Source: Octopus bimaculoides
Lineage: Eukaryota
Length of the DNA stretch: 37,919 bases
NCBI RefSeq assembly: GCF_001194135.2
Contig: NC_068986.1
Location: 9,065,363 to 9,103,281 of the forward strand
Direction of reading: 5' to 3'
Shown here piece by piece: positions 61-27,101 of this stretch. Every line of letters starts with the position of its first letter. Positions within the stretch are counted from its first letter, which is position 1. The position numbers were made by a program, and so were the translations under genes. Below the pieces are notes generated by a model. That model searched no databases. It had not been told where the DNA came from and worked only from the letters and a program-made list of their open reading frames with translations.

Positions 61-61
<1 letters not shown>

Positions 62-1883: not shown

Positions 1884-1923
<40 letters not shown>

Positions 1924-2559: not shown

Positions 2560-3440
2560 TTAAGCAGCGGAAGATGGGTGGGGGAGAGAGTAACGGGTTG
2601 CACACCCCAGGAACAAATGGCGTGTTTGGCCACACCTCACGGATATAATTGCGAAGGCATTGCCGCAGAGAATGGCCCAGAGATTCTCGCTACAACAACC
2701 ACCCCCACCTCGCGGGACTCATTCCTCAGATGGGCTGCAGTCATCTCAATTTTTAATTAGGAAATCGGTAGTGCGGACTTCCAGAGCACCTAAGGTTACG
2801 AAGGCGACCGGCACAAACTGATAGCGGCTCGTCAGGCTCCTGTTTTCTTTGTTTTAACTTTCTCACCTCTGCAATGCGGGCAGCGACACCCGGGTTCGCA
2901 ACCACATCCCCAGGTAAGTGTTGACCCAGACATAAGCTGAACTTAGACAGCTCTCTATGTCTGAATCACTTCAGATGATACTTATAGAGTATGGACTCCA
3001 AATGCTGTTGGAAGAGTTTCTGTTTGTGCAATATTCTCCTTCATGTTAAAGGCGTCCACAATGTTAATGCGTCGGCTATAAGTTAATACATCCCTGTGCC
3101 AGTCATTTCCCGCGCTCATAGAGGGAATTGGGAAGAAAGACTGGGGGGGAGTGGATAGATGAGGACCTTCGTATGGAGACTGAAATGACTATTTAGAAAG
3201 ACTCAGTTTCTGAGAGAGACTGGTTTGAACTGGTTTACTCTCTCACCTCTTTCACATTATAATTGTTAGAAATGAGGAGTGTGTCGCTGTTGTATCGACC
3301 GCATAGAGAGACGATAAGATGGTGCACTGTGCCCAGTGTCAGAAAACTCCAGCTTGGCCGGATGTTGGCGCTCTTACCGAGGCGATGGTACTTACGGCTT
3401 CCACAACACAGACCTGCGTACAGTTTCCGTTTACCAAATT
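2560..3440. promoter_or_regulatory. CpG-rich segment containing a candidate plus-strand first exon (ATG 2874 to donor after 2913, MRAATPGFATTSP)
   Basis: GC and CpG content are visibly above the background, and there is a perfect donor CCCAG|GTAAGT. It could instead be repeat-derived (e.g. a LINE 5' region). Confidence 0.3.
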
Positions 3441-3570
3441 CCTTAAAGTATATGCGCGCGTTATATACATGTGTTTATGCGGAGAGAGCGATTTATAGGA
3501 TATACATACAAGAGATCATGCAAAAGATTTACATAAAATAAGGACATCATTAGAAACAAAATTACAGATA

Positions 3571-3605
<35 letters not shown>

Positions 3606-4085
3606 GGCACGGCTGTGTGGTTAGGAAGCTTGCTTCCCAGAAACATGGTTCCAGGTTCAGTCCCACTGAGTGGAATCTTGGGCGAGTGTCTTCTGCTATA
3701 GTCTCGGGCCGACCGAAGCTTTGTAATTGAATTTAGTAGGCTGGAGTTGCTGCTGTGTGTGCACATGTGCTTGTGCCTCCTAACAGAGAGGGAAAAAAAC
3801 TACCCCACTTGGTAACAGGTGGGTGTTGGCGTCAGGAGGGGCATCCGGTTGTAGAAAACTTTCCACACGAATAGTGCTGCACATATGTATATAAATGCTT
3901 TAGAAAAATAGGCACAGGAGAGTGACTGTGTGGTAAGTAGCTTGCTTACCAACCACATGGTTCCGGGTTCAGTCCCAATGCATGACACCTCGGGCAGGTG
4001 TCTTCTACTATAGCCTCGGGCCGACCAAAGCCTTGCGAGTGGATTTGGTAGATGGAAACTGAAAGAAACCTGTCGTCGTGTGTGT
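3606..4085 (+). mobile_element. Two family-1 SINE 5' halves (3606-3775, 3911-4085)
   Basis: A-box-like GGCTGTGTGG and B-box-like GGTTCAGTCCC heads that closely match 30493-30660. Confidence 0.9.
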
Positions 4086-4131
4086 GTGTATGTGTATATG
4101 CATGTATGTATGTATGTATATATATATATAT

Positions 4132-4182
<51 letters not shown>

Positions 4183-4311
4183 ACACAAAGACCATTGCAT
4201 AATTTCCTGTTCCTTCACAATTTATTTCATTTCATATTACACTATGTACTCGACTAATGTTTTATTCCTGAGAGAACTAATGCCTACATACGAGTTATTA
4301 AAGTAAGACTT

Positions 4312-4890
4312 TAATAGGCACTCCGTCGGTTACGACGCCGAGTCTTCCAGTTGATCCGATAATCAGAACTGCTCGTGAAATTAACATGGAAATGGCTGAG
4401 CACTCCGCAGACACGCATACCCTTAACGTAATTCTGAGAGAGATTCAAAGTGACACAGAATGTGACAAGGCTGGACCCTTCGAAATACAGGTACAACTCA
4501 TTTTGAAATACAGGTACAACTCATTTTGAAATACAGGTACAACTCATTTTGAAATACAGGTACAACTCATTTTGAAATACAGGTACAACTCATTTTGAAA
4601 TACAGGTACAACTCATTTTGAAATACAGGTACAACTCATTTTGAAATACAGGTACAACTCATTTTGAAATACAGGTACAACTCATTTTGAAATACAGGTA
4701 CAACTCATTTTGAAATACAGGTACAACTCATTTTGAAATACAGGTACAACTCATTTTAACCAGCTGAGTGGAGAGGGGCAATGTGAAATAAAGTGTCTTG
4801 CTCGAGGACACAACACGTCGCCAGGAATCGAATTCATGACCTTATACGATCGTGAGCCGAATGCCCTAACCACTAAGCCACACGCTTTCA
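4312..4890 (-). mobile_element. tRNA-headed SINE, family 4, with an internal tandem amplification
   Basis: The minus strand begins GCGTGTGGCTTAGTGGTTAGGGCATTCGG...GAATTCGATTCC (A and B boxes). The body matches 29320-29480. Confidence 0.8.
4482..4757 (+). repeat. Minisatellite: 12 exact copies of the 23-bp unit GAAATACAGGTACAACTCATTTT
   Basis: Counted directly: 276 bp = 12 x 23, with no spacers. Confidence 0.97.
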
Positions 4891-4974
4891 CGAGTAAAAA
4901 AAAACTTAGAGACAAAGGAAGTGAAACTATTCATGTTGAAAAATAAGTAAAAATGATAATTATATAGTTCTGTA

Positions 4975-5125
4975 TTTAAGAGATGAGGAATTATGTACAT
5001 TTACATTTGACGGATGTTTGTCCTCATCTTGTTTGTTGTTAACACAACGTTTCGGCTGATATACCCTCCAGCATTCATCAGGTGTCTTGGGGAAATTTCA
5101 AACCTGGGTTCTCATTCCTAACGAT
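4975..5125 (-). mobile_element. Penelope-like element pseudo-LTR fragment
   Basis: Carries the CTGATGA...CCGAAACGTT motif typical of Penelope-like terminal repeats. No RT or GIY-YIG ORF is seen. Confidence 0.6.
5041..5086 (-). ncRNA. Minimal type I hammerhead ribozyme motif (probably decayed)
   Basis: Minus strand reads GACAC-CTGATGA-A-TGCTG-GAGGGTATAT-CAGCC-GAAA-CGTT-GTGTT. Helix I is GACAC/GTGTT, helix II is GCTG/CAGC, helix III is the palindrome ACGT, and the cleavage triplet is GUU. Confidence 0.65.
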
Positions 5126-5140
5126 GTTACTATTATTATA

Positions 5141-5171
<31 letters not shown>

Positions 5172-5328
5172 TATTAATCACTAAAAGAAGCAGCACATAT
5201 GCTAGGACACAACAACCTCCTAAGCAGACCGAGTGCAGATATGAATAGCATATGGGAACCGGTATTGAGGAAGGATAGGAAAAATAATAGATTTATAAGC
5301 CTTAAAATTCACCCCATAATTGCCTACG

Positions 5329-5382
5329 GGCATATGGCGTAGTGGTTAGGAGCGCGGGCTACTAACCCCAAGGTTCCGAGTT
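5329..5382 (+). pseudogene. Truncated tRNA-derived SINE head
   Basis: A-box TGGCGTAGTGG and a D/anticodon-like region, cut off within the T arm. No acceptor stem. Confidence 0.7.
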
Positions 5383-5559
5383 AGTAGTCGGATGCCATTC
5401 CTGTCGCCAACCGTCACCTGTTTATAGGCAACGGAATATCCCATCCACACCCACCCCATGACCAGAAAGGTTACCCACGGAAAACGGACAAGATTGCTTG
5501 TATGACGGTGATGTTTGTGATATCAAGTGATATCAAGATTGCACACACACACACACACA

Positions 5560-6815
5560 CACGAATGTGTGGATGTGTTTGGCACTTCTGTATGCAACCG
5601 TCTACATCCATAAGCATCACATGACCAAACCAGTGCAGTCTTCTCTCTTGCACACAGCATCTGATTCTTACACCCAGCTTTTCACTCAATACACTAACGC
5701 CGTTGCACATCCAGCAGAGCATACTACCTTTATTCCTCTCTAGCCTTCACATGTTCTCTGCATTCAGGACCCACGTCTCACTATCATGGTGCATTGCTGT
5801 TCGTATACATGCATCATACAATCTTCCTTTCACTCGGAAAGAGATTTTTGGTTGCCAACAGATGTAAAAGCTCTCTGAATTTCCTCCATCCTTTCCATGC
5901 AGCCTCCCCTACAGCTAATTAGGTCCCCTAGGTAGCAGAAATTATTCTCAATCCCTGAAGAGCCTCCAGAGAATTTGAGAGAATCAAAATCCTGAGTATC
6001 TAGTTTCTATGGCTCCTGTGCATTTTCCACAATTGAACACTACTTTCTCTGTTAACCTTCCTATAATTCCACTGCACTTCATGTGTGTCCATAGCTTGCA
6101 CTAGGTACACCATATACAATTCCTCCCTACACCTTTTCTATATATCACACAGAGCTACTTATCTGATGGGGGAAGAGTCCTTTCCTGCTAAGTTAACCTT
6201 GATTCCAGGTTTTGCTTCCACACCTGGAATTTCTTTTCTAGTTGTTACAGAATCTTATATGAGGGTAAGATCACCAGTATATGATTTCCTCTTATGGCCT
6301 GGAGGACGATGATAAATAGGAGGGCACTGAGAACAAAACCCTGATAAACGCCTGTTTGTACACTAAATTCATCACTATCACCTCACTGACAGAACCTCTG
6401 TATATGACTTGTATGGCTTCCACACACCACTCGTGTCAACCCCTAGCTTCCTCAGAGCCCACCATATCACACAGCAGGGTACTTCTCTGTCAAAGGCTTT
6501 CTCTAAGTCAACAAACGCCAAGTACAATGCTTTACCCATGGCCAAATACTTCTGCTGCAGTTGCCTGATTGTAAAGATGGTGTTAGTAGTGTTTCTCCCC
6601 AGCACAAAGCCAAACTGCACTCCTAATCTGATTCTGCTCCTAATCAATAGGACAATAACTCTCTCTGTAACTTGCATAATCTGGTCCAGCAACTTGATGC
6701 CTCTGTAATTTCTTGTCTAAAACATCTCTCTTACTCTTGTATAATGCTGCTACACCAATCATCAGGGATCACACCTTTCCTGAATAACCTGATTAACTGT
6801 TCAGGTGACTAGACC
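5560..6815 (-). mobile_element. Decayed RTE-type LINE (reverse transcriptase and C-terminal region)
   Basis: Translations include QFGFVLGRNTTNTIFTIRQLQQKY..LYLAFVDLEKAFDR, QGFVLSPLLF and RRLHWFGHV, with many stops and frameshifts. Confidence 0.92.
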
Positions 6816-7535
6816 ATATCTTGCTCAAATATAAAAATGTAGCATTTACAATAGAATTGAAGGTGAACTTTAAAATCAGCAGCCAACAATCTACTGGATT
6901 ATCTTTGCTTAATAATCAAAAAGGTTATATTAAAGTCCGTGGGAAACAAAATGTAGAACTAGAATTTTAATATCTGTCTAAATATTGCCTTATCTTTCAT
7001 TTATAAAGAACAGCATACTGTGATTGTTTACCAAATTCCATAATACACTCACACACATACATATTTGCAGCACATATATAATTCTCTAATTTGTCTTTGC
7101 TTATTCTAAATACAATTATTGTTTAGTTAAACAGACTTTATATGCAAGCATGAGCTACAATAGATTTGAACAATAACAATGAAGAAGAGTGTTGAATGAC
7201 ATTGTATCATCCACAGATAAAAGCTTCCATCCATCAATATTTCAATAAAAACAGGAACTGTATTATTTGGGTCCCATGACAGGGAGAAAATAGGAGAATC
7301 TTGTTCTTTTTTTTTTTTCTTTGGCTTTTATTATCTAAAATGGCAATGACCTCATAAAGGATTAATGAGAACCATGGAATGAAAGAATGGCTTTTCTAAA
7401 AAACACATGATGAGACAAAAGTTTTATAACACAAAACTGCCACCACCCCCTCTCTGCCTCCTCCCCACCTTTCTATCTCACAACAACCACACTTTATAAT
7501 TGACATTCATGAACAACTTTGGAAATCAGGACTAA

Positions 7536-7705
7536 AATTTAACTCTTTAGCATTTAAGCCGCCCATATTTGGCCCAAATATTCTGCTTTATGTTCAAAGC
7601 AGCCAGATTCGGCATCTCACACGTCCTTTACAATACCATTCTAAAATTCAACAATCACATCAAAATCCCAAAGCTATGAGATAATACAAGATTAATTAAA
7701 ATGAT
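7536..7705 (-). mobile_element. TTAA (piggyBac-type) MITE family A, partial
   Basis: Reverse-orientation match to 17836-18067. Terminus is TTAACTCTTTAGCATTT. Confidence 0.75.
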
Positions 7706-7732
7706 ATGAACAAATAAGAATTTGATAGAGAA

Positions 7733-7995
7733 ATCATCATCATCATCATCAATTAACATCCATTTTCCATGCTGGCATGGGTTGGACGGTTTGACTGAGG
7801 TCTGGAAAGCCAGCAGCTGTACCAAGCTCCAATCTGGTCTGGCAGAGTTTCTACAGCTGGATGCCCTTCCTAACGCCAACCACTCTGAGAGTGTAGTGGG
7901 TGCTTTTTTATGTGCCACCAGCACAAGAGCCCGTAAGGCAGGCCTGGCAACGATCATGTTCAGATGGTGCTTTTTACGTGCCACCAGCACAGGGT
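7733..7995 (-). mobile_element. Family-2 interspersed repeat with a (GAT)n tail (SINE or LINE 3' end)
   Basis: Shared core GGAAGGGCATCCAGCTGTAGAAAC...CCAACCCATGCCAGCATGGAAA followed by (GAT)n. Other copies: 5385-5550(-), 8300-8455(-), 9195-9376(+), 21230-21440(+), 27120-27310(+), 32150-32320(+), 32690-32970(+). Confidence 0.85.
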
Positions 7996-8506
7996 TTAAA
8001 TATGTTCCACTCTTGATATACTGATTTTTTTTGTTTTGTTTTGTTGTTGTTTTTTTGTTTGTTTTTTTTGTTTTTTTGTTTTTTCAGATCTAAAAAAAAA
8101 AATTGTTGGACGTTTTGATATTAAAGATTTTCCTGAAATTCTGATGTTTAGAAACTTTATTTTAGTGAGACATATTTCATTAGAAACAAAATTCTACAGG
8201 GAAAGGGAGATAGGGAATACCATGAGGATTACAGCTGCCGTCTGGCATCCATTTTTTCTCTCCATACACTCTTACTGGAACGGTAATATTGGTGCCATTC
8301 ATCATCATCATTTAACGTCCCCTTTTCTATGCTGGCATGAACTGAATGGTCGGACACGAGCTATTGAGCCACTGGCCTGAATGATGCTCCAATGTCTGCT
8401 TTGGCATGGCTTCTCGGTTGGATGCCTTCCTTAATGCCAACCAATTTAAAGAGTGGACTAATTATGAGGGTACCAGCATCAGTGAGATCAGCAAGTAACT
8501 TGCAAG

Positions 8507-8801
8507 CAGGGCTGTGAAGTGAAAACAAAAAATTTTGACTCCAACTGACTCCTGTACTATTGGCACCTCTGACTCCGACTCCTCTTTATGTAATTAAGTG
8601 ATTGTGGTCTACATATCTCATAAAGCATATGTATACGCTTGGACTTTGAGTCAGCCCATATGTTACAACTGGTTTATATTAAAGAATAAAGACATTATGG
8701 GTCGGAGTCAGAGTCGGTAGAGCTTTACTGACTCAGACTCCAGCTACCCCTTAATTGTTTCTGATTCCAACGCCACGACTCTGACTGACTCCACAGCCCT
8801 G
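8507..8801. mobile_element. hAT-type MITE
   Basis: TIRs CAGGGCTGTG(A/G)AGT. Exact 8-bp target duplication CTTGCAAG at 8499-8506 and 8802-8809. Internal GACTCC/GGAGTC subterminal repeats. Confidence 0.9.
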
Positions 8802-8833
8802 CTTGCAAGACAAAATTCCTCAACTGAGAAAAG

Positions 8834-8834
<1 letters not shown>

Positions 8835-8886
<52 letters not shown>
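8835..8886. repeat. (TAG)n trinucleotide microsatellite
   Basis: Seen directly. Confidence 0.97.
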
Positions 8887-10467
8887 TTGAGTGAGATGAC
8901 TTTTCATCAAGTGGTGAGAGATTCAAGTGTGATAGGGGAAGAGGAACAAGTGTCATGCTGTAAGGGAGAGACACACAATTACCCCAGTTGGAAAAGAAAA
9001 CGGGTGGTGGTGGTGGTGATGTGTCAGGACATAGCCTCAAGACAGAGGAAGATGAATATAAGTGGTAGCGGTGACATCTGTAGGTGATGAAGATTTCATC
9101 AAATCCCCAAATACTTATAAGAACTACCACCACCATATCAAACACACACAACACTATTTTACACACTAATACAATGTGGAATTACACTCACCACTGTTTG
9201 GTGACTGTTGATGCTGGTGCCACACAAAAGAACACCCAGTTCACTCAGTAATGTGGTTGGCATTGGAATGGGCCTCCAGCCACAGAAACCATGCCAAAAC
9301 AGACAATATATCCCCATGTGGCTCCTGGCAAAGAATCCAACCCATGCCGGCATGGGAAATGGATGTTAAATGATGGTGTAGAGAAGAAGGACAGCTTAAT
9401 AAATTCAAGCTCATTCCATAAAGCTGGTGAAATTAAATTGCTCTGCAACCAGATTTATTCCTAAAGAAACTGAACAACGGTAACACATTCCCCACCACCC
9501 CACCCCATGAAGCTGCAGCCATATTACTTTAAATCCTCATAATAAAATCCCAATTTCTCAATCTAAATCTATGACTAGTTTTTATCCATCTCTGTCCTAG
9601 GTAGCTTCTAATTAACAAATCAATTAATGAAATCATTCTCTTTACAACAGAAATTGAAGAGAAACTAATTTAACAAATGTTCTGCTTAGAAACACTGAGC
9701 TTGCGGTCTGCTTTTTTTTTTTTTTTTTTCAATTAGAAACTGTTACTCATTAATATATCACAGTAATTAATGATAAACCTATTAAGAATAATTTTATAAA
9801 TGAGAAAAGGAAATAAATTAGAGGAAAAATTTCCAGTAATTGCAGGTCAAATGAGAGAAAGAGAAATGAAGAGAATCCAACAAAAATGAAATTTTACATT
9901 TTATCTCTAAGAATATTTCCCTTTTACTTGTCTCTGTCATTAGATTGTGGCCATGCTGTAGCACCGCCTTCAAGAATCTCTTTAGTCAAACAAATCGACC
10001 CCAGTACTTTCTTTTTAATCCTGGTACTTGTTCTATTTTGCTGAACTGCTAAGTCACAAGGACACAAATTACACTAACACTGGTTGTCAAGCAGTGGAGT
10101 ACAAACACAAAGGATAAACACACACTATATATATGTATGTGTGTGTATATATACATATATATATATATAAAGCAGGAGTGTATATCTGTATGTATGTGTG
10201 TGTGTGTGTGTGTGTATATACCCAACAAAAGATCTGAAACTGCATCGTTGAGAAAAAAAAAACAGATTTGATTTTCAAAATGTGCATCCCAAATTGGTTT
10301 TCAGTAAATAATGATCAGAAAATATAATTTAACACAGGAAATAGCTCAACTTTTTAGATCGCTAAATACCCTTCTTACCACAAGCGTGCTATCCCTCTTG
10401 ACCTGACCCATATTCTCATGGCTTCATCCAAAAGGAGCACATATCCTTTTTTTCCCCCTACACCTAT

Positions 10468-10900
10468 ATCATCATCATCATCATCATCATCGTTTAACAT
10501 CCGCTTTCCATGCTAGCATGGGTTGGACGATTTGACTGAGGACTGGTGAAACCGGATGGCAACACCAGGCTCCAGTCTGATTTGGCAGAGTTTCTACAGC
10601 TGGATGCCCTTCCTAACGCCAACCACTCAGAGAGTGTAGTGGGTGCTTTTACGTGTCACCCGCACGAAAACGGCCACGCTCGAAATGGTGTCTTTTATGT
10701 GCCACCCGCACAAGCCAGTCCAGGGGCACTGGCAACGATCTCGCTCGAAAATCCTACGGGAGCCAGTCAGGCGGTACTGGCAACGGCCACGCTCAAAATG
10801 GTGCATCTCATGTGCCACCCGCACAAGAACCAGTCCAGGGTCACTGGCAACGATCTTACTTGGCTTGCCGGGTCTTCTCACACACAGCACAGCCATGTAG
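10468..10900 (-). mobile_element. Family-2 repeat, long copy with an internal duplication
   Basis: (CAT)n start on the plus strand and the same core as 7733-7995. A unit of about 75 bp is duplicated at about 10668-10741 and 10783-10857. Confidence 0.88.
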
Positions 10901-13027
10901 CTACCAGTTGAAATTTATAGTTGTATATTCCAATTTATAGTTGGAGGTGTTCATACATCTTGAATTCACTGCTTATGGATCAGTTTACACATCTGGTTAG
11001 ACACAAACAGGTCATGACATTTAATAACTGAGCACCCCACCCTCCTCACACCTAGAATCAACTATGTTCAACCAGGTACATCTACATACATATGAACACA
11101 CAAGTCAAGATATTACCTGATGCTACAGGTACACGTATGGAAATGCCCACAAATTTGGACGTGTGTGTGTGTGTGTGTGTGTAACCACCACTTAACAACT
11201 AGTGCCAGTGTATTTACGTACCCATAAATTAACAGCTTCGTAAAAACAGACCAACAGAACAAGTGTCAGAAATGGAAAGAGAAATAAGTCCTGGGTTGGA
11301 GTCATTCGACAAAAAATTCTTCAAAGCAGTAATCCAGCACGGCCGCAGTCCAGTGACTGAAGCAAGCAAAGGATAAAATATCAATCTGGATCTCTCTCTC
11401 GCTCTCACACATGATGCATATGGCTGTTGTGATTGAGCAAATAGAAAGAAAGAGGTGAAAGCAGTTAAGAAATATAAAAATGGGTCAGTTGTTTTGTGTG
11501 ACAGAGGATATACTTGCATAAAAAAAACATGAAGACACTCTTGCTCAGGAGAGGCTGTCTGTAGCAACAGTGTAACTTGTTTTTTTTATATATTTGTTAA
11601 TAATCTTAACTAAAAAAAAAATGTAACAATAAAAAAAAGCAGCACAGACAGACATAAATGATTTGTAGGGAGAACTACATAAAAATAGTTTGGTGCCTTA
11701 CAATTCTGAAATTAACTTTTGATGAAATGTGAAACAATAGGTAATGTGAAAAAAAAAAATTCAAACTTCTCTCCACATAAAAGCAAAACAACATTGATAA
11801 AGTTAGAAACAGCCAGGGTTGCAGAATAAAAAATTTGCAGTCAGAAAAGCAAAATGTTAAGCTTAACAGTTTCATGCAATGCAAGTTATAGTAATGGGAG
11901 GGGAAAAAAAGGACTCAAAAAGTTTAAAATCCAACATTTGATTGATCAGTTAATCCTTTTTCCTTAAACTATACAGTATCTGCCTAAAATAATTTCCTTT
12001 ACAAAAAGACTGGATTATTGAGAATGTTCAAGTGTCTTGAATGAAGAAATTAATGTGGTTTAATTTTCAGCTTACCTAAAAACTCATTTTTTTAACATTC
12101 TTTTTATTATCATAGCTGTTGCTTAAAAGAAACAAATTTATTATTGTTGTTGTAGTTCCAAATACTATAAATTTTGAGGTAGAGATCCTGGTATGGAAAA
12201 TAAAAAATCCTGTTAAAAAATTGTTTCTCTAAACAAAGTATATTTCGAATACAGAGTAGGCAGTTATCTCCCCTACACTTTAAGGCTGTAAAAATGAAAC
12301 TCTTACAGGAAAGCCACCTTCAAACAAAGGAAAATGTTAAGATTTTATAGTTTTATTTAGAAAGAAAAGAAAACCCACAAAGTGTTTCTATGCTCCTAAA
12401 TATAAATAAAGAATGAAGTTATTAGTTATAAGATCCTCGGTGAAATTTTAAATAGAAACTAATTTCAAATAAATTTTTAGATGTAATACAATATTTATTT
12501 TTACAAACGAAAATACATTTCAAAATCTTTTGTTGTTTCTAGAATTTTTTGTCATTTTTGGAAAGATTAATATCTGCAAATATTTGAAATAACAATGCAT
12601 TAACTCATAATCAAATCAGGAAAACAAACAACAAAATATGGAGAAGACTATATAATAATAATAATAAATCTAAATAAAATGCAGTTTTAATATATTAATT
12701 ACAAACATGCAAGTATCAGCTGAAAATAAACAATGTTAATTAAATATTTTAATGAGACACATTATAAATAGCCAGATGAAAGAAAGAAAAAAGCAACAGG
12801 CCTTTCAGTGGCCCTGTTGTGTCTTTCCAGTTTAAAATGTTTCCTATTCATTGTTTTCTACAACTTTAGATGGAATGGTTCATCACAAATTGTAGAGTAT
12901 TTGATGTAATATGAAACATTTCTTGTATTAGGACAGGTGCTAAGACCAAAATTGTGTCAAACAGGTCAGCTTAAGCTCCTTCACAAACAGGAATTCCAAA
13001 AATCCTCCACCCAACCTGCTAATTTTT

Positions 13028-13059
<32 letters not shown>

Positions 13060-13605
13060 GTAATTCTATAACAACGCGTTTATGTAAGCAACACCAAGAT
13101 GAGCAAAACTTAGTTTTAGAATTAAGCAATAGATTATGAAAGACAACACCACAACAAACATTTTAGTCAATTCAACAAAAATATCAACACTTGGAAAACA
13201 AAAGGCATACCAAAACAAGAACCTGATTTTAAAATAACGATCAACAGAAATATCACACAAAAAAAAAAAAAATTAACCAGAGCTATTGAATGTCACATGC
13301 TACTTTTTAATTTTTACCCTAAATTGTTATTTCAATGACACAAAGGAAACACAATTCAACCAAATAAATTTGGTTATACAAAAAAGATATTAAACACAAA
13401 CAACATCAAAAACGATAAAAAGGAACTAGAAAACAAGATCCGATCAGAGGAGCAAACAATTAGCATTTGACCTTAGATTGTCGACTAATGACAACATTGG
13501 TGATTATTACAAATATTCTTTTAGATGTAGCTTGATTCTGATGAACTAAATCTAAATTTTCGTGAAGAATTGTATGGCTGTAGATGGGAAATTAGATCAA
13601 CTGAC

Positions 13606-13926
13606 CTGGTTCTGAGATGTAGACGATGTTGAAAAGCTTAAACAAAGCTACTTGGGCAGCTGCTGCCTTGGCAAGTTTCTTGCTGCGACCAGCCCCCTGC
13701 ACCGTTTGGTCATTAGCCTTTACCGACATGACAAAATTCCTATCATGAGGAGGACCAGATTCTGACATCAGTTCATAAACCAAAGGTTCGGGCAACAATT
13801 CATTTAGATACATAACCGGGTTTTTGGTTGTAAGAGTTGGTTTAAGAGACTGCGTTCCTTTGTTCTCATTGTCAGCATTGTCTTCAACAGTTTCAATTAT
13901 AACATTAGGATCTTCAGTGGAGTTTC
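13606..13926 (-). CDS. Exon encoding an ADAR2/NF90(ILF3)-class double-stranded RNA-binding domain with an acidic linker
   Basis: KNPVMYLNELLPEPLVYELMSESGPPHDRNFVMSVKANDQTVQGAGRSKKLAKAAAAQVALFKLFN has the KNPVM.LNE, GPxH, FVMSV and KKxAK..AA..AL dsRBD hallmarks. Acceptor is ttttatttag|GA and donor is CCAG|GTCAGT; 321 nt, phase 1-1. Domain call is confident, gene identity is not. Confidence 0.9.
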
Positions 13927-14850
13927 CTAAATAAAAACAGTTGAAAACAAAGTAATTAGAGAATAGGACACGAAACATTTCCTACCTCTACATAACTGAT
14001 TACGACAACTACTTATCGCAAGCAACTAACAAATTAAGCAGAACCATTCCAAAAGAACTCTATACCATTTAAACAAATCCTGCTAAATCTACTCAACAGA
14101 TGATCAAAATCTAAGAATCTACTGCAATGTGACAGCAAACATTCACTGAATCAAACTCAGGTGTCCAGTTACTACTATGTAGGTAGCAGTAAATGAAATA
14201 TATACCATAAGGAACAATGTGATATCAACTAATTTTACTACAAAAACTGAATTCAAACAAAAGCAGATATGAAGCACAAATACGAAACAAACAGAAAAGA
14301 AAACTGAGACAAGCATTTCTAATAAAAGAAACAAAATTTCATACTAAAAATATCTGAAAAAGCTCTCAAAACTGGAAAAACATTGTTGCATGATTACTGA
14401 AAATGCCATTTATAACTTGATTGTGGAATTGAGATGTTAATACAGCAACAGTTGATGTGTTCTTAGAAGATCCAAGTTCAATCTAAATATATAACATGGA
14501 AATTATTAACCCTAATACTTACAGAAAAACAATAACATTGTTTTCATGTTCATTATAAAACTAAGAACCTTATTCGACCAAAAAAAAAAAAAAAAAATTA
14601 ATAATAATTATCATAAATATAAAAGAGAACAAATGAAAAACTGAATCCGTTGATGGAATTGGAATATCACATCAAATCATTCTCAGCAGATAATTTAGTT
14701 GTTTTGGATTTTAGTTTAAGCTCCAAATGTTGAAAAAATAAGTTTCGTTTTGAACAGATTTNNNNNNNNNNAGAAATCTAGGTTCCTTTGCGTTTTTTTA
14801 GGTTAACGATAACTTTCAAATCCATATTTTGAACAAAATATTGCAGTGTA

Positions 14851-16162
14851 TAAGGGTGGGCTGAAAAGTTCATAGGCTGACTATGAAGGAGTGACTAAGA
14901 AGTGCTGTGAAATCTTGCATACATTAATTTCAACCCTTCTTATTAATTACTGCATTGTTTCTTTCCAGATAAACTGACATCTGACTGTTCAAAAAAGACT
15001 TCAAATGTAACTGGTAGTGACTTCTCATGAAAATGGACAAAATTTGGCATCATGATGCTATGAAGTACCTGCAGAAAAAGGGTTTGGCCCCCAATAGCAT
15101 TCATGCTGACATGGTTGCTACATTAGAGGATGATGCTCCAGCTTTATCAACAATCCAAAAGTGGGGAGCTGAATTTAGGAGATGAAGGGAGTGTTTTGAA
15201 GATGACCCAATGTCTGGACATCCTGCAACTGCCACCACTGAGGAAAACCTTGATCGTGTTCACCACATGGTGATGGATGACAGGTGATTGACTAGAAACC
15301 AAATAGCCAATGCTATTAGCATATCCCTTGACAGAGTTGAGAATATTCTGCACAATGAACTTTGCATGACAAAGGTTTCTGCTTGGTGGGTGCCACATCT
15401 TCTGACACCTGATCAAAAGTGCACCAGACTGATCACATCACAGGAGAAATCCGACATTGTCTGAGGCAGATCCNNNNNNNNNNNNNNNNNNNNNNNNNNN
15501 NNNNNNNNNNNNNNNNNNNNNNNNNNNNNNNNNNNNNNNNNNNNNNNNNNNNNNNNNNNNNNNNNNNNNNNNNNNNNNNNNNNNNNNNNNNNNNNNNNNN
15601 NNNNNNNNNNNNNNNNNNNNNNNNNNNNNNNNNNNNNNNNNNNNNNNNNNNNNNNNNNNNNNNNNNNNNNNNNNNNNNNNNNNNNNNNNNNNNNNNNNNN
15701 NNNNNNNNNNNNNNNNNNNNNNNNNNNNNNNNNNNNNNNNNNNNNNNNNNNNNNNNNNNNNNNNNNNNNNNNNNNNNNNNNNNNNNNNNNNNNNNNNNNN
15801 NNNNNNNNNNNNNNNNNNNNNNNNNNNNNNNNNNNNNNNNNNNNNNNNNNNNNNNNNNNNNNNNNNNNNNNNNNNNNNNNNNNNNCCTCCCATTCTGCCG
15901 ATTTGGCCTCATTTGACTATCATCTGTTCCCTAACATGAAAAACACTTGGCTGGGAACCAATATCAAAGTGATGATGTTGTCACGTCTGCTTTTGATGAC
16001 TTTTTTGACCAAGCTTCTTCACCAGCAGGGTCCAAGCACTGCAACACTGATGAAAGAAGTGTGAGAACTGCAGGGGGGGGAGGGGGGTAATGTAGAAAAA
16101 TAAAACCTTGTTTGGTCACATTCCATGAGAGTTTAGCCTATGAACTTTTCAGCCAACCCACA
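14851..16162 (+). mobile_element. Full-length decayed mariner transposon
   Basis: 28-bp TIRs (25/28 matching) with flanking TA at 14849-14850 and 16163-16164. Transposase from ATG 15033 has stops, a WVPHLL motif, and a frameshifted YSPDLAPxDY-like motif after the gap. About 1.3 kb including 412 N. Confidence 0.93.
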
Positions 16163-16557
16163 TAAGTCTCAGGATAAAGAAATAAATTTGAATCTGATTC
16201 TATATAGAAATTCCAGTGAGCCAGAGGATGGTCAAGAAAAATACCAGGATGGACACACATGAGTGTACATGTATAAACACACATACACAGGGCACACCAC
16301 ATGTACTAGCTTCAGATTATGTAGCTCAGAACATTAAAAACATCTAAGAATCCCTCAAAAAACAAGGTCAACTGCTGGTAAACAAAGATGCCAAGTTTCA
16401 ATTCTCTACTAAAGCCATTTCCCTTTGCTTTCATCGCTAATTTCTAACTTTCCCTCTTTAATTAGGCCTTATGCCAAGTCAAAAGAAACCACCATTTCAA
16501 GCTAATAAATCATATCCAAGTATAAGAGTCAATAAGATAACTGGACGGAACAGTAGG

Positions 16558-16644
16558 CTACAACAAAAATGTATTAGGAAGAACATGCTCCAAGAATTTG
16601 TCTAAATCTTCAACATAATTCAGCCGATACCTCCATGTGAAAAC
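16558..16644 (-). CDS. Terminal coding exon of the multi-exon gene (VFTWRYRLNYVEDLDKFLEHVLPNTFLL*)
   Basis: Acceptor ttttgtcttcag|G. Open only in phase 0, which matches the upstream microexon. TAG at 16558-16560. Confidence 0.7.
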   Translation of the reverse strand, partial: VFTWRYRLNYVEDLDKFLEHVLPNTFLL

Positions 16645-16885
16645 CTGAAGACAAAATAATTTGTTTGAATTTTGCCACAAAAGATAACATAATTGAATCC
16701 AACACCGACAAGCCAAAATTTTCCAAAATGGAATCACAGTGATACTTCCAACATTACCTGAAGATAATTGGAGGAAAAGAAAGTCAAAAACAATGGGTTT
16801 TTTTATTGGGGTTTTTTTGGTTTTTTTTTTTAAGTAAATCTTTATTTATAAAACTAACTTTGTACTGAATCTGGGGAACTGTCAC

Positions 16886-16902
16886 CTTCAGGATGACATC
16901 AG
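16886..16902 (-). CDS. 17-nt microexon ((A)DVILK)
   Basis: Long pyrimidine tract ending ttttgcag| and donor AAG|GTGACA. Phase 1 to 0 links both neighbouring exons in frame. Confidence 0.65.
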
Positions 16903-16959
16903 CTGCAAAAATGGAGAAAGGAAAAAGAAACAAAATATTTTAAATTGAATTTTTTTTAC

Positions 16960-17086
16960 CTGGAGATCCTACAGATTTGTTCAGTTTCAGAGAACTTGAC
17001 CACTTTCGCAGATATTCCAATACTTCTACTGCCTTAACCTGACCATTAACTATGCTAGAAAACAGCAAGAACACCAATACACAAGC
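16960..17086 (-). CDS. Internal exon (ACVLVFLLFSSIVNGQVKAVEVLEYLRKWSSSLKLNKSVGSP)
   Basis: Acceptor tttttctag| and donor CCAG|GTAAAA. 127 nt, open, phase 0 to 1. Confidence 0.75.
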
Positions 17087-17835
17087 CTAGAAAAATCAGC
17101 ATAAAATCAGCTATGACCATGTGCTTTAGAAGATCATTTCATAATCATGGAGGTTCCAGGTTCAAATCCATTCTCTGGCAAAGTTGTTGTTTTTTTTTTT
17201 GTNNNNNNNNNNNNNNNNNNNNNNNNNNNNNNNNNNNNNNNNNNNNNNNNNNNNNNNNNNNNNNNNNNNNNNNNNNNNNNNNNNNNNNNNNNNNNNNNNN
17301 NNNNNNNNNNNNNNNNNNNNNNNNNNNNNNNNNNNNNNNNNNNNNNNNNNNNNNNNNNNNNNNNNNNNNNNNNNNNNNNNNNNNNNNNNNNNNNNNNNNN
17401 NNNNNNNNNNNNNNNNNNNNNNNNNNNNNNNNNNNNNNNNNNNNNNNNNNNNNNNNNNNNNNNNNNNNNNNNNNNNNNNNNNNNNNNNNNNNNNNNNNNN
17501 NNNNNNNNNNNNNNNNNNNNNNNNNNNNNNNNNNNNNNNNNNNNNNNNNNNNNNNNNNNNNNNNNNNNNNNNNNNNNNNNNNNNNNNNNNNNNNNNNNNN
17601 NNNNNNNNNNNNNNNNNNNNNNNNNNNNNNNNNNNNNNNNNNNNNNNNNNNNNNNNNNNNNNNNNNNNNNNNNNNNNNNNNNNNNNNNNNNNNNNNNNNN
17701 NNNNNNNNNNNNNNNNNNNNNNNNNNNNNNNNNNNNNNNNNNNNNNNNNNNNNNNNNNNNNNNNNNNNNNNNNNTTTTTTTTTTTTTTTTTTTTTTGTAG
17801 ATGAGAAACTACATTATTCAAATTAACCTTTTTAC

Positions 17836-18067
17836 TTAACCCATTAACATTCAGATTATTTCATAATCTAGTCATAATCCTTATTCATTCATACTGTTTC
17901 AAATTAATTATGCATCATCTCATAGCTTTGAGATTTCAATGATGTGATTGTATATTTTTACAATGACATTGAAGGGTAGGTGTGAGAGGCTGGATCTGAC
18001 CAGTTTGAACATAAAATAGATAAAATATTTGGGCCAGATATGGCTAGTTTAAATACTAAAAGGCTAA
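17836..18067 (+). mobile_element. TTAA (piggyBac-type) MITE family A
   Basis: Termini TTAACCCATTAACATTC and AATACTAAAAGGCTAA. Further copies at about 21940-22170 and 35871-36052. Confidence 0.8.
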
Positions 18068-18151
18068 GACAGTAGGGTGTGTGCTGAGGGAGATTTGGCT
18101 ATTATTTCTAGCAAGTCATGTAATTCATCTAAGCTGTGATATTAAGTAAAC

Positions 18152-19997
18152 TTGTGGCCAATGATCCAACTCCTGGACTTTGGTTATTGTGCCAATTATT
18201 TGTGGAAACAATTCTTTACAGTTTAACCCAACACAAATTCTGACATTCCAAGACAAAAGAAAGAAACCAATAAAAGACATTTTGGTTCCAGTTTTATATT
18301 TGGATTGCCTTATCCAAATATAAAGCATGATTATTCTTGTATTGCTCCTGATTTTGACTGAATTCAGAAAACAAAATTAAATTGAACTGAAATAGAAAAA
18401 GTACAAAAATAGAATTGGTACTTTATTTTGTTTTGGGGGGTTTTTTTGTTGGCTTTTTTTGTTGTTGAGAAAATTGGTTTCTTTCATTCTTTGGTGAATG
18501 AGATTTAAAATAAAAGGTTTCTTTAACTTTTTTAATACCAAACCACATGAAAACACCCAATTCTATAAATGCAAGCTTTTGGGTTTAAAGTGATCTAAAG
18601 TAAAAACTTTCTTCCGTCAAAATTTCATGTTAATTTGTTCCAAACACTAGATTAATAATGACAAAGTTATTTCACTAACTTTTTCATTATTTTCAAAATT
18701 AACAAAAATAAAATGAATGTACTTCAGTAAAAATATGGTAACAACAAATGGTTTGAAGATAAAATATTCAAGTACATATTTACATTTCAATATTTGGTTA
18801 TCACCATAAAAATATGCACCACCAGATATAAAATTAATAGTTTTTGTAAGCTTTTAAAACAAATTTACAAATTCCTACAAGGTTTTAATGTAAATCTTCA
18901 TTGAGAAAGAATTAAACACTGTTGCAATACCAGTCCTTAGCAAATCAATCAAAATGGAATTTATTTACAAGAATATTCCCAACTTATTTCATTCTGTTCT
19001 TCTATGATGTGTATCCTTATCTGCGCATTTGATTTTTTATTACCCATGCGGGCTAACAAAAGATGAAAGGCAAAGTGGACCTCAGCGTAATTTGAGAACG
19101 TAACGGTAGATGAAACACCGCTGAGCATTTCGCCCAGCTTGCTAACGTTTCTGCCAGCTTGCTGCCTGTGTGTATCCTTCTGTGCGCATCATAAGGGTGC
19201 ATCATAAGGGTGCGCATCATAAGGGTGCATATCACAGAAGAGCAGGATGAAATAAGTGGAGCAAAAGCACACACGAATATTTCAAACATTATGTAAAAAC
19301 TTAAAAGAGAGAAAATATAATTAAAACCGCTTTGAATATTCAGTAGAACCAGACCATCACTCCCTTTATAAGTTGAGACTATAGAAGCAAGCAGACTTCC
19401 TTAGTTTATATACCAACATAAAAGGGTGGCAAAAATTTTGAATGGTACCCCTAACTACCAGTGCTACTTTTAGTAATCCACTTGTTCTGAAGAAACACAT
19501 CTCTGCTAATACTAATCTAATTTGGAATCATCAATTCAGCTTGTGACTATAAATATTTGCTGAATATGTTAACCTGGACTCCATCACCTGAAGATCTTCC
19601 ATCAAATTGATAAGAAAATTCTTAAAACCTAATTTTGAAAATTACTCTTCTAAAGTCTCTACACTAAGTCACTTAACTCCTCTAAGAATATGGATACAGA
19701 CAATAGGGAAAGACTACATATTAGGACGTATTTAAATCCTTAGTAATTTCCCACCCCTCTTGATTTCAAGCTAAAACCAAACATGTTTGAGTGTTTGGAT
19801 ATCAAGGAATTCAATAACTACTGTGACTACTGAAGAAATTCATTCAATCTCTGAGAATCTTCAGATCTTCAACTCTAAATGTTTTTAAATATTTCACTCA
19901 CAAATTTCCATCAATTTCTGCATGCCATGTTTTATATAATCATTACCTACGTACACTCACCTCCTTGACTGTTTGCTTGACTAAACAAAATGCATTT
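18152..19997 (-). CDS. Three candidate internal exons (19961-19997, 19574-19628, 18152-18239)
   Basis: AG/GT-bounded, stop-free, and phases chain 0-1-2-0 (KCILFSQANSQG / GFKNFLINLMEDLQVMES / RICVGLNCKELFPQIIGTITKVQELDHWPQ). The last donor (GTTTAC) is weak. Confidence 0.4.
18522..18745 (+). mobile_element. TTAA MITE family B, uninterrupted degenerate copy
   Basis: Matches both halves of the interrupted element at 22355-22812. Confidence 0.7.
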
Positions 19998-20688
19998 CTA
20001 TGCAAATAGTTGTGACTGCAGCCATAGCACTAATCCTTCTCTCTGCTTTATTCCTTGTTTTAACATGAAAGACGAAGCTTAGATGAAATTACAAAGAGAA
20101 CTACTAAAAGCCAGCAATTTGTAGCCAGTTGAATTAATTGTGGGTGCTTATTTGATTCACCTCTGAGGAACACAAGACAAATTCCATCTGTCAGGAGGAT
20201 TTGAACATGGAACAAAGAAATGGAGGAGCTAAATACTGTAATCCATCAAGTCTGACACTACCATTACTGCCATTACATCACCACATTCTTCAGACTTAAG
20301 ATGTCCATCATGCCAGGTTTTGGTAAGCCATCACTTAAGTGAATTATGTTGGAACTAATGGCCAGACATCTTTAGTGAAAGAATGCAGATTGAAAAATTA
20401 GGATTTAAAACACATTGCCAGTAACATACTTTAAAGCTGACAAGATTAAGAACAAAGTTGGGATTAGAAGAATCTAAATTCTAATTGTGGAACACAGAAT
20501 ACTTGGAAGTTTACATTTCTCATAATGGAATAATATTAGTCGCTCACTGATACCTTTATCTCAAGTTAGCTTTCTATGAGAAAACTAATTTAAATGGTTT
20601 ATATGCAGATGGCATTTTGAATTATTTCATATCTAAACAAATTTATTTTCCTAAGTCAATAGATGAACAATTTTGTACATTTTCTTAC

Positions 20689-20788
20689 TATATCATTGCA
20701 TATTTTCATCTCTATGTTGGCAAGCAGAGTAAAGTTACGTTGGTTGATGAGGTCAGTATAATACTGAAACCTGTCTACCAATATTTGA
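20689..20788 (-). CDS. Internal exon (QILVDRFQYYTDLINQRNFTLLANIEMKICNDI)
   Basis: Acceptor ttttcattccag| and donor ATA|GTAAGA. 100 nt, open, phase 2 to 0. Confidence 0.8.
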
Positions 20789-21486
20789 CTGGAATGAAAA
20801 TAACATTGCTTTGTTTTTTTTTCCTAACTTCATATTTTTAGCCTTTAACATTCCATGTATTAAATCTGTTCCCATTAATTTGTTTATAAATTTATTTGCT
20901 AAAAACAAAAATCAGTTCTCAAATTTTGTCTATTAAAACTTTACTCATGTTCATTTCCCTCTGATTTTGATGTTTTCAGTCCTAAAATGTCATGTTATAT
21001 TCTAGGAATCATTTTAAACAGTTACAATCTGTAGGGTGAAGAAGCTTCTTTCCCCACATAATTTTGAGTTCAGTCCCACGGCATGGCACCTTGGGCAAGT
21101 ATCTTTTACTATAACCCTAAGCCAACTAAAGCTTTATGAGCAGGTTTGGTAAACAGAAACTAAAAGAAGTCCATGATGATGATGATGATGTATGTATGTA
21201 TGTATGTATGTATGTATGTCTGTGTGAGCCAATCACCTGACACCACATGGTTGTCAATGAGCATCCCATCATGTTATTCATTTGCAGTTTTCCATGAAAC
21301 ATGTCTGGCCATGGAGAAATATCATTTAGAAATGAAGGTTTGCAACGGGATGTGGCAAGAAGCCATAGAAAATGTTCTTCAATGAAGTCCATCTAACCCA
21401 GGCAAGAATGAAAAAATGGACATTAAAACAACGATGATGGATATTGATTAGAGGAGAAACTGAAAATGGTTATGTTCGTTAGTCAC

Positions 21487-21600
21487 CTGTTTCCATTCAT
21501 TTGATGTGGTCTTATTAAAAGTTCTGAGAAATATTTAAACCAAAGAAAAAAACATCTGATTAATCCAAATGTGCTGCTTGAAACTGTCTGGAATAGAATC
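21487..21600 (-). CDS. Internal exon (ILFQTVSSSTFGLIRCFFLWFKYFSELLIRPHQMNGN); acceptor ambiguous
   Basis: Donor ACAG|GTGACT with a phase-2 end matching the next exon. Open for 114 nt with three possible acceptors. A 37-nt exon at 21666-21702 may precede it. Confidence 0.6.
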
Positions 21601-22354
21601 CTGAAAACTGTTATCTTTATCGCACAAAGAAAATGTTAGTAATTTTTTTTTTTTATATAAAATACCTGCAGATGTGTAAAAAATATGGTAGAAATTACAG
21701 TGCTGCATGAAAATAATTTTGATAGTAGCATTGTTTATAAATTAGTTTGGGATAAATCCAGGTATTATTGGAAAGAAATACATTTAAATCAGCAAAAAGT
21801 ATAACAAACCTCCCCCACCTCCCCCTGAAAGTCTCATATCTTTAATTCCATCATTTTCCCCAAGAATTCTAGATCAATGGTTCTAAAGGTAGGCTGTGTC
21901 TCTGACCAAAATACTTGGCTTTTGTTGCTAGATCAACTCCTAACTCTACCATTCAATTTATTTCTGTCAAATCTAATCTTAATTTATTCACATGGTTTGG
22001 AATTAACCATGTATTGTCTTGCAGCTTCAAAATTTCAATGACGTGTTTGCTTATTCTTTAGAATGACATGGGAGGACTAGTGTAAGAAGCCCGATCTGGC
22101 AGGTTTGAAACATAAAACAGGGAGAATATTTGGACCTGATATGGCCAGTTTGAATGCTACACGGATATACTATTGTAGATTGGACAAATATTTCAATAAT
22201 TTATCAGCAAAGGGCACCAAAGATGGGTTTCATTGTATTCCAACCCACCCCACCCACCCCCAGAAAATTCTAGTGATTCTTCTACAGGGTTACCCCTTAA
22301 AAAGCAGAGGGTTAATAGTCATAGGTCTTCTTTTTTTTAAAGAACAAATCCTTT

Positions 22355-22812
22355 TTTGAATACAACCAGAATATAGTCAGCCTGAGACTACTCCTGGTTC
22401 TATGATACGACCTTCCGGTCTTAACAGGTAATCTAAATTAAAATCTTCCATCAAAATTTCAGGTTCCAGACACCACCTTAACCCTTTTGTTACCAACTTG
22501 GCTGAACCGGCTCTAGCTCTGAGTACAAATGTCTTGTTTTCATAAGTTTTGAATTAAAATCTTCCACCAAACCTTAGTCACAATTTATGCTCCCAACACC
22601 AGCTTAATGATAACCAAGTTATTTTACTAAATTCTTTGTTGTATATAAAGTAATTGAAAAAAACACAGAATATCTCAAAATAAATACAGTAACAAAAGTG
22701 TTAATAATAATAAAAATAATGTTATTTTACTTAATTCTTCGTTAATTTTCAAACTTAGATAAAACAAAGGCAGTGTATTTCAACAGGAAAATAGTAAGAA
22801 AAGAATTAAACA
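22355..22812 (+). mobile_element. TTAA MITE family B interrupted by a related MITE (inner element 22482-22700)
   Basis: Inner element is TTAA|CCCTTTTGTTAC...GTAACAAAAGTG|TTAA. Joining the flanks recreates the copy at 18522-18745. A partial reverse copy of the inner element lies at about 24711-24800. Confidence 0.85.
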
Positions 22813-23159
22813 TAATGCTGGCTTTTAGTCATCTAGAAATAATATGCAAGAAAAGTAATATCTTCAAAATGTTCCTTATGCTCATGAAAAGAAGAAAAAA
22901 AAACAAATATTAGAGTCGTAGACATTAAGGTGCTTTGCAAACAGAGTATACATTTGAAATAATAATAATAATAATACTAATAATGGTTTCAAATTTTGGC
23001 ACAAATTTCAGTGGAGAGTAAGCCAATTATATTGACGCCAGTGTTCTACTGGTCCTTATTTTATAGACCCCAGCAAGATTTGAACTCAGAATGAAAAAAC
23101 AAGCAAAATGTTACTGAGCACGTTACCTGGCATGCTAACAATCCTGCCAGCTTTCCACC

Positions 23160-23198
<39 letters not shown>

Positions 23199-25360
23199 TG
23201 GCCAATAAAATACGCCAATTAACTGTGCAGGTATACATGCGCCCAACCTTTGTCATCAGGTGTTAAAACTGTTATCGATGTATTCTGTAACTTATCTAAT
23301 ATATTAACTAATAGATGAGAGTGAAATGAAGTTTAGCCGCTTAGACGTCCACAAGCAGAGGGTAAATACGGTTGCCGATAAAGAGAACATTAAAGTACAA
23401 AAGACAAAGACAGCAACATAAAAAAGTCGTTCCAACAATGTTTTTAGATTTTATTCCCAACTGTCCAAATTATTAGAAACATCATATTGGTAGCAAATCA
23501 ATAAATACAACAAACAGATTGGTTGCAAAAAGGCAGCAACAGCCGCAGCTGCTCTAAATACCGACTCTCCACCACAAATCTACAGTCGGTGAAGAAATTC
23601 AGTTTTCTTAAAACATTTCTTACATAATCTATAAATAATTCTAAGAAGATTTCCTCCTCCTTCTCCCAACCCACCTCATATTTTACAATGTTTTTCTAAT
23701 TATAAAAGATACCTCCATAAATTCTGGTTCATGAATAAATTTGTAAGTAAATGTTTTTACAGCTGAATAGCCCTGCTTTGTGAGTGAAATAAGAACAATC
23801 GTATGGCATTTATGGAGTTTTATTCCATTCCTCAATCAATCACTCAATATTTAGCCGAGGGACGGGGAGAGGCAGAGGTTTATTACAATAAATATTTTCA
23901 GTTAAAGAGAGCAGAGTTGAAAGAGTGCTAGCCTAGTGACCAAAGAAATGACCAACAGTTTATACCCAATTAAATAATATCAATGATGACCACATTGCTT
24001 TTAAGCCACTATTGTAGCTTGTGGGTCATTGTAGGGTTGATGTGAAAGTGGAAGAAGGCCACAGGGAGGTAGTGTAGAAAGAATATTCCTGCCCTTTATC
24101 TCAAAAAGATAACCTACTGCATCCTTTTAGTTTAATTAAGCAATTATTTCCCATCTCTTGCTCAGTTTAATAAGTTCTTGTTTATTCTTTAAAGAAATAC
24201 ATGTACAAGTTGAATATTCCTAGTAATTGGCTGAACTAGTAATTCCATGACCAGGAACTCAAATCTCCTTATTCTAGACTCAGTGACACTCAACTGAGAC
24301 CCATAGAAGGTTTTAGTAAAACTTATCTGAAATAAATCAGTTATACTTCTACAATACACAAAATATTAATTTTTTTAATCCAATTCCCAATAATATTTAA
24401 TTAGTAAGATTTTTTTTTCTTTTATATATGGTGAATGGCTGTGGAGGTCCAGTCAAGTAAAACAGGAATCAAAGAGATCCATGAGCCAAAAATGTTTGAG
24501 AACGACTGTTCTAGAGAATTCTTGCTTCAGTCGAACAAAAGATTCCACCATTCTTGAATTGTTAGGATTCAGAAAGTGTATCCCAAGATGTAAAAGAAAC
24601 ATCTAGCATTGCATCATCTCAGCCTTTATTTAATGCTGCAGATGAAGAAATTACCAATTCCATTATGACGGCAAGTTGACTGAGAGATCTGAAGTTTTCA
24701 TCCATGTCCATTAACCCTTTCTTTACTGTATTTATTTTGAGAGGCTCTGTGTTTCTTTCAATTACTTTAAATATAACAAAGAATTTAGTGAAATAACTTA
24801 TTAATAGTTGCTCTGGCAGATATGTTAGATAAACCAGTTAATAAATGCTAACAAATGTTAACAGAGAGAATTGAAATATCATCCACAAAACTTTAAAAAG
24901 TTAGTTATATTTCAGGTCATCATGAACAAACAAATGAATGCTATGGAATTTGAAAACTTAACTTTTCAAAATATCAAGGTGACAATATGTATTTTGTTGT
25001 CTGGCCGTAGAGAAACACGCACACACTATGCTAATGTACAAAATATTTTGTACATCAACCTCAATTTAATTTACTGAACACCAGCCAAATGATATATCAA
25101 TACATTTGATACATAAGTAACTCAATATAATTGATTTCTTAATAAGCCCCATTAAAAGTTGAACTAATTAATCAACCAGGAGGATAAAAGTGAAAAATTG
25201 TTACTATTTACCAAGTTCAGGTTATAAACCACAGCATGAACCTTAGAGTTCCCTAAGAACCTACACCAATAATTTAAGAAGTTACGGGTGAAGATAGAAA
25301 TTGTTGTCATGGTTTGGTTTAAGGAGAGTATTCCTTTGAATTTATAAAAAACAATTTCAC

Positions 25361-27100: not shown

Positions 27101-27101
<1 letters not shown>

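Follow-up and report, generated by a model that had tools for sequence, protein, structure and literature searches.

A lone dsRBD exon in a 38-kb octopus window is very probably the alternatively spliced cassette exon of ADAR2

A 38-kb stretch of DNA (37,919 nucleotides, the whole of which we call the window) holds a single exon that encodes a dsRNA-binding domain (dsRBD), and the locus raises the question of which gene this exon belongs to. The preliminary description of the locus regarded it as an orphan and offered three readings: an optional ADAR2 exon set in very large introns, a piece of some unannotated dsRNA-binding gene, or a domain cassette that has been relocated. We are close to certain that the exon is an annotated, alternatively spliced cassette exon of octopus ADAR2, corresponding to the optional exon 2 of squid ADAR2. 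For octopus, its inclusion and its skipping are both predicted by annotation models, namely those of RefSeq and of the O. vulgaris genome project.

The features assigned in the window are collected in Table 1. Only one of the three frames of the exon is open, the one starting at 13924. Two nucleotides precede the whole codons and one follows them, and the exon is therefore of phase 1-1. The acceptor reads ...ttgttttcaactgtttttatttAG/GAAACTCC (slashes mark splice junctions throughout), with its AG at 13928-13927, and the donor reads ...GAACCAG/GTcagt, with its GT at 13605-13604, both on the minus strand. The 106 residues specified by whole codons are NSTEDPNVIIETVEDNADNENKGTQSLKPTLTTKNPVMYLNELLPEPLVYELMSESGPPHDRNFVMSVKANDQTVQGAGRSKKLAKAAAAQVALFKLFNIVYISEP. 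Taken with the split codons, the cassette contributes a Gly, then NSTEDP...VYISEP, then the first base of an Asp codon. The AG acceptor, the GT donor and the one open frame bear out the 321-nt, phase 1-1 exon with splice sites that had been described, and the motifs listed with it could be located as VMYLNEL, SGPPHDR and SKKLAKAAAA.

Table 1. Positions and strands of features assigned in the window.
Feature	Position	Strand	Details and basis
ADAR2 (ADARB1 orthologue) cassette exon	13606..13926	-	321 nt (3 x 107), phase 1-1, 107 codons; sequence and translation
Acidic N-terminal linker, G-NSTEDPNVIIETVEDNADNENKGTQSLKPTLTT	13826..13926	-	Translation; within the alignment to Argonauta P0281 (whole exon peptide 92% identical)
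dsRBD core, residues 34-100, KNPVMYLNELLPEPLVYELMSESGPPHDRNFVMSVKANDQTVQGAGRSKKLAKAAAAQVALFKLFNI	13625..13825	-	Pfam dsrm, E=3.1e-12
3' splice site, polypyrimidine-rich tract and AG, ttgttttcaactgtttttatttag	13927..13950	-	Sequence; kept in L001
5' splice site, GTCAGT after ...CCAG	13600..13605	-	DNA match to L002 ends at 13608; kept in L001
Part of upstream ADAR2 intron, ~24 kb	13951..37919	-	Repeat-rich, three assembly gaps
Part of downstream ADAR2 intron, ~13.6 kb	1..13599	-	SINE-like repeats, decayed reverse-transcriptase fragment
SINE-like repeat copies	1379-1523, 3613-3739, 3908-4117, 21029-21219, 26913-27098, 28098-28286, 30120-30287, 30490-30694, 31681-31868, 34267-34487, 34416-34556		
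Decayed reverse-transcriptase fragment	6381-6716, possibly on to 5474-5746	-	RVT_1, E=8.9e-6, below gathering score

The exon peptide matched the Pfam dsrm profile (PF00035) at E=3.1e-12 and 47.3 bits, where the gathering cutoff is 23, and this match is far beyond chance. Membership of the dsRBD family is seen both in the profile score above that cutoff and in the presence of the helix 1 motif, the GPPH loop and KKLAK. Among solved structures, the best match was the dsRBM2 of rat ADAR2 (PDB 2b7v; E=7.7e-17, 64.5 bits), followed by dsRBD2 of ILF3 at 54.7 bits, and the two-domain ADAR2 chain 2l3j matched at E=1e-29 over both domains. That ADAR2 dsRBM2 and then ILF3 dsRBD2 are the best solved relatives agrees with the ADAR2/NF90-type class given in the preliminary description, whose call of a cephalopod genome was also correct.

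In structures of ADAR2 dsRBMs with RNA, contacts are made by Val-Met in helix 1, by Ser and His in the beta1-beta2 loop, and by KKLAK. The cassette keeps each of these, aligned with the RNA-contact parts of ADAR2 dsRBM2. Its likeness to the dsRBM2 of vertebrate ADAR2 (ADARB1; PDB 2b7v, 2l2k, 2l3j) amounts to 59% identity over 66 aligned columns in the human protein, and the two have in common KNPVM..LNEL in helix 1, the SESG..H loop and KKLAKA. In vertebrate ADAR2, however, the dsRBM2 type is the second, constitutive dsRBD, whereas the octopus cassette is an additional N-terminal copy and an optional one. Identity to octopus ADAR2's own third dsRBD, the canonical dsRBM2-type domain, is 53%. 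In a neighbor-joining (NJ) tree of 55 dsRBDs, the first dsRBDs of cephalopod ADAR2 formed one clade with 100% bootstrap, placed on the dsRBM2-type side of a tree whose deeper branches are poorly supported. These cephalopod domains are 59% identical to human dsRBM2, as against 42-47% to most dsRBM1-type domains (lowest 35%). The grouping published for the extra dsRBM of squid is reproduced by this tree.

Annotated octopus proteins contain the exon in full. The 106 residues are 100% identical to residues 15-120 of a 784-aa protein named "double-stranded RNA-specific editase 1" (P0273), deposited as O. vulgaris CAI9725036.1 and O. sinensis XP_029637250.1, and to residues 16-121 of the 785-aa isoform X1 of O. 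sinensis (P0282; XP_029637249.1). Both proteins also carry dsrm domains and A_deamin. Identity to the Argonauta hians protein GAB1608333.1 (P0281) is 92%. Compared as protein and junction codons, the long isoforms of O. sinensis and O. vulgaris show no detectable difference from the exon, and the window appears to be the ADAR2 locus of O. sinensis/O. vulgaris or of a very close relative.

The term orphan therefore does not fit a peptide that is an internal segment of annotated ADAR2 models of O. sinensis/O. vulgaris and Argonauta hians, and neither an unannotated dsRNA-binding gene nor a relocated cassette is called for when the exon already lies inside an annotated ADAR2 gene. The first of the three initial readings, the optional exon in very large introns, is the one that stands, given annotated include/skip pairs and a gene of ~114-115 kb. 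The protein comparison and phylogeny proposed along with those readings yielded the 100% match to ADAR2 isoforms and the clade on the dsRBM2 side. The preliminary description had also allowed that this might simply be a constitutive exon, with the rest of an annotated ADAR2 lying beyond the window or in its gaps. Apart from the exon being annotated as alternative, this is essentially what the comparison shows.

The skip isoforms, annotated as XP_029637252.1 and XP_029637253.1, differ from the long ones by precisely this exon: P0275 (677 aa) is P0273 without exactly 107 residues, and P0274 (678 aa) is likewise related to P0282. The P0273/P0275 pair shares the first exon MAATSAMNMEVER and reads MAATSAMNMEVER/G-NSTEDP...ISEP/DGEQDV versus MAATSAMNMEVER/DGEQDV, while the P0282/P0274 pair uses another first exon, MRDLHISKMKDLSL. 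The two skip junctions are ...MEVER/DGEQD and ...KDLSL/DGEQD. The include junctions (ER/G..P/DGEQ) and the skip junction (ER/DGEQ) are both compatible with phase 1-1: the last G of exon 1 and the GA of the cassette make Gly, the last G of the cassette and AY make Asp, and on skipping the G of exon 1 with AY yields the same Asp. Three more annotated isoforms (P0185, P0283 and P0276) splice other first exons straight to exon 3.

These proteins did not surface at once. A first word-indexed protein search gave only two anonymous ORF calls from short genomic contigs. When the cluster representatives were searched exhaustively with HMMER, many matches to ADAR2, ILF3-like and other dsRBD proteins were obtained, none of them a close cephalopod protein. 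Both searches missed octopus ADAR2 because the sequence that stands for its 90%-identity cluster, the 701-aa isoform P0185, has no such exon. The cluster was reached by a search with a bivalve ADAR2 (P0116) and comprises 13 sequences from O. vulgaris, O. sinensis, O. bimaculoides, Argonauta hians and Sepia pharaonis. We accordingly rejected the apparent support for an orphan exon from the first search as an artefact of a cluster representative that lacks the exon. It may be observed more generally that clustered protein databases can hide isoform-specific exons if the representative does not contain them.

Other cephalopod sequences support the limits of the exon. A genomic contig of another octopod (L001, SRR11869391) aligns through the exon and both flanks, with 87% DNA identity across 1.85 kb when gaps are counted. 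Its exon has 98.8% DNA identity (4 differences in 321 nt, one amino-acid change) versus ~93% in the aligned flanks, and the exon is thus more strongly conserved than its surroundings. Both splice sites are unchanged in this contig, with 0 differences in 13927-13932. A contig from a marine metatranscriptome (L002, JGI 3300018952; protein P0165) is a near-full-length ADAR2a-type mRNA, and its source is taken to be a decapodiform (squid- or cuttlefish-like) because it is near-identical to Sepia pharaonis ADARB over the next exon. It joins the cassette to that exon as ...VYTSEP/EGDHGDVK..., its dsRBD is 93% identical, and at the DNA level it can be matched to the window as far as 13608, right at the predicted donor. 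A further cephalopod genomic contig (L003, ERR12370324) matches the dsRBD core only, up to the donor.

The annotated ADAR2 gene covers ~115 kb in O. vulgaris (GCA_951406725.2) and ~113.7 kb in O. sinensis (GCA_006345805.1), with a divergent HRG-family gene upstream and no other gene listed within its range in either assembly, and a span of ~114-115 kb places the other ADAR2 exons outside the window. In agreement with the preliminary description, the window showed no other dsRBD, deaminase or DZF exon: of 148 dsRBD, ADAR and other dsRNA-binding proteins compared with it by tblastn, none matched anywhere but at this exon. Extensions of tblastn matches beyond the donor, to 13340-13424, cross stop codons and were discarded as spurious. 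The peptides of every other definable octopus ADAR2 exon (the first exons; for exon 3, GEQDVKSEEG and NALMQLNE) are absent from the window. Among the 149 largest stop-to-stop ORFs, the meaningful Pfam matches were this exon and a decayed RVT_1 fragment only, next to two weak matches to domains of unknown function (E ~0.002-0.003). As no other ADAR2 exon or gene is supported there, the remainder of the window is read as ~24 kb of upstream and ~13.6 kb of downstream intron, and the extra dsRBD lies entirely within one exon, with very large introns on either side.

Two earlier statements about these surroundings are either incorrect or without support. The window, which had been called ungapped, contains N runs at 909-918, 14762-14771, 15474-15885 and 17203-17774; these are assembly gaps of 10, 10, 412 and 572 bases (1004 in total), and small exons could in principle sit within the two larger ones. 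The exon had also been placed between the stop codon of an unrelated gene and another first exon, and we found support for neither. The proposed first exon at 750-900 was rejected, being a (TAC)n/(TGC)n trinucleotide and (CA)n repeat beside a gap, without a Pfam match. On the minus strand of 750-907 the GT is a chance occurrence in the repeat; on the plus strand the ATG at 876 (MAQPNDAYTHT) runs into the CA repeat and then into the gap at 909. No match of 750-907 to any ADAR2 first exon was found.

The arrangement has a well-described precedent in squid. Squid ADAR2 has five coding exons in ~175 kb (Vallecillo-Viejo et al., 2023; PMC10278661), its exon 2 is the optional first dsRBM, its first three introns measure 40-65 kb, and the extra dsRBM groups with human ADAR2 dsRBM2 (PMC10278661). 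An optional exon adding an "extra" dsRBM was described by Palavicini et al. (2009), as cited within PMC10278661 and PMC7192619. It separates sqADAR2a, with three dsRBMs, from sqADAR2b, and both proteins, of 89 and 71 kDa, are seen on western blots (PMC7192619). The longer form was found in cell bodies (somata), while nerve and axoplasm samples contained exclusively sqADAR2b, and the discussion in the same study suggests that the extra dsRBM might help explain why sqADAR2a is more nuclear (PMC7192619).

Squid exon 2 and the octopus cassette are each one optional exon that encodes an N-terminal dsRBD upstream of the exon with two canonical dsRBDs; the introns on either side are very large in both, and in both the domain groups with human ADAR2 dsRBM2. 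The decapodiform protein P0165, with its 93% identity over the dsRBD, uses the same donor. In squid it is the optional exon 2 that sets ADAR2a apart from ADAR2b, and the octopus exon corresponds to it. A point of difference lies in size: the squid gap between 89 and 71 kDa exceeds what the octopus 107 aa would predict, so that either the optional segment may be longer in squid than in octopus or the tags may differ.

In the octopus models, the included exon puts 107 codons after a short first coding exon and ahead of the large one that encodes the two canonical dsRBDs. The inserted codons specify an acidic linker and one complete ADAR2 dsRBM2-type dsRBD, and the predicted product is a three-dsRBD editase of 784-785 aa; skipping would give the canonical two-dsRBD enzyme of 677-678 aa. 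The frame is kept on skipping because the exon is of phase 1-1 (G/GA = Gly, G/AY = Asp). In squid, the extra dsRBD is reported to increase both the affinity for dsRNA and the editing activity. By analogy it may do the same in octopus, where its inclusion may also affect the subcellular location of the enzyme.

It could be argued that the exon is a constitutive exon of ADAR2 and that the annotated skip isoforms are annotation artefacts. The annotated XP_ isoforms are indeed computational models, and the comparison with L001 indicates that the exon is under strong purifying selection, both of which favour constitutive use. We nevertheless consider it highly improbable, since two independent first exons would each have to carry a false skip model beside the include model (P0273/P0275 and P0282/P0274), P0185, P0283 and P0276 bypass the exon from other first exons, and the homologous squid exon is experimentally optional, with both proteins detected on western blots (PMC7192619). 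An alternatively spliced ADAR2 cassette is the reading we retain.

The remaining explanations would take the exon out of ADAR2 altogether. That it is an orphan, belonging to an unannotated dsRNA-binding gene or representing a relocated dsRBD cassette between two unrelated genes, has a close to negligible chance: annotated ADAR2 proteins contain the peptide internally at 100% identity, the ADAR2 range has no other gene listed in it and the 149 ORFs support no flanking gene. The points in its favour were the absence of other ADAR, ILF3 or STRBP exons from the 38 kb and a first database search that gave anonymous genomic ORF calls only; that search missed ADAR2 only since the representative, P0185, lacks the exon. 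An origin in an ILF3/NF90- or STRBP-type gene is suggested by the 54.7 bits of ILF3 dsRBD2, the second-best solved match. Yet ADAR2 dsRBM2 scores better, neither tblastn nor Pfam on the ORFs detects a DZF exon in the window, and ADAR2 isoforms bearing A_deamin contain the identical exon. With no DZF domain and an exon that is ADAR2 sequence, we rejected such membership, the probability of which we put at practically nil.

The cassette exon of ADAR2 is already known: public ADAR2 models of octopus and argonaut contain it, and biochemical work on the squid counterpart dates from 2009 onward. The only mildly new point is that a third, N-terminal dsRBD occurs in many ADAR2 models of non-cephalopod molluscs. 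Three dsRBDs are present in models of Haliotis, Gigantopelta, Patella, Crassostrea, Saccostrea, Mytilus and Ylistrum (labels within P0157-P0166 and P0172). The scallops Argopecten and Mizuhopecten have models with four, and for Mizuhopecten both long and short models are present. In the gastropod and bivalve models the extra dsRBD lies N-terminal to the two canonical ones, as in octopus, and its motifs resemble those of the cassette (KHPVMYLNEL ... LFNxVYVPD), but identity to the cassette is only 39-50% and the NJ tree leaves orthology unsettled. Such similar N-terminal domains suggest that the extra domain may predate cephalopods. The N-terminal extra dsRBD, usually called a squid or cephalopod peculiarity, may thus be an ancestral molluscan feature, a tentative proposal to which we give slightly less than an even chance. 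Should these domains prove orthologous, the cassette of octopus would represent the cephalopod form of an ancient exon, perhaps one that is widely optional.

With introns of tens of kilobases, it is to be expected that a 38-kb cephalopod window may show a single, frame-symmetric domain exon, and such an exon should not be taken for an orphan. The exact coordinates and junction sequences can now be used for measuring ADAR2a/2b-type splicing in octopus, and such measurements bear on the way in which coleoids adjust their exceptionally extensive RNA recoding.

The introns themselves contain several repeat-derived features. Rfam and tRNA scans of the window were both empty. The RVT_1 fragment is probably a LINE remnant in an ADAR2 intron. 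The ORFs at 15150-15437 (minus strand) and 15888-16061 (plus strand), beside the 412-base gap, bear a tentative resemblance to mariner/Tc1 transposase remnants (...DLASFDYHLFPNMK...); Pfam gave no match for these two ORFs at E<=0.1. Eleven or more copies of a SINE-like repeat of ~190 bp are spread over both strands, mostly beside TA/CA microsatellites, and yield recurrent pseudo-ORFs.
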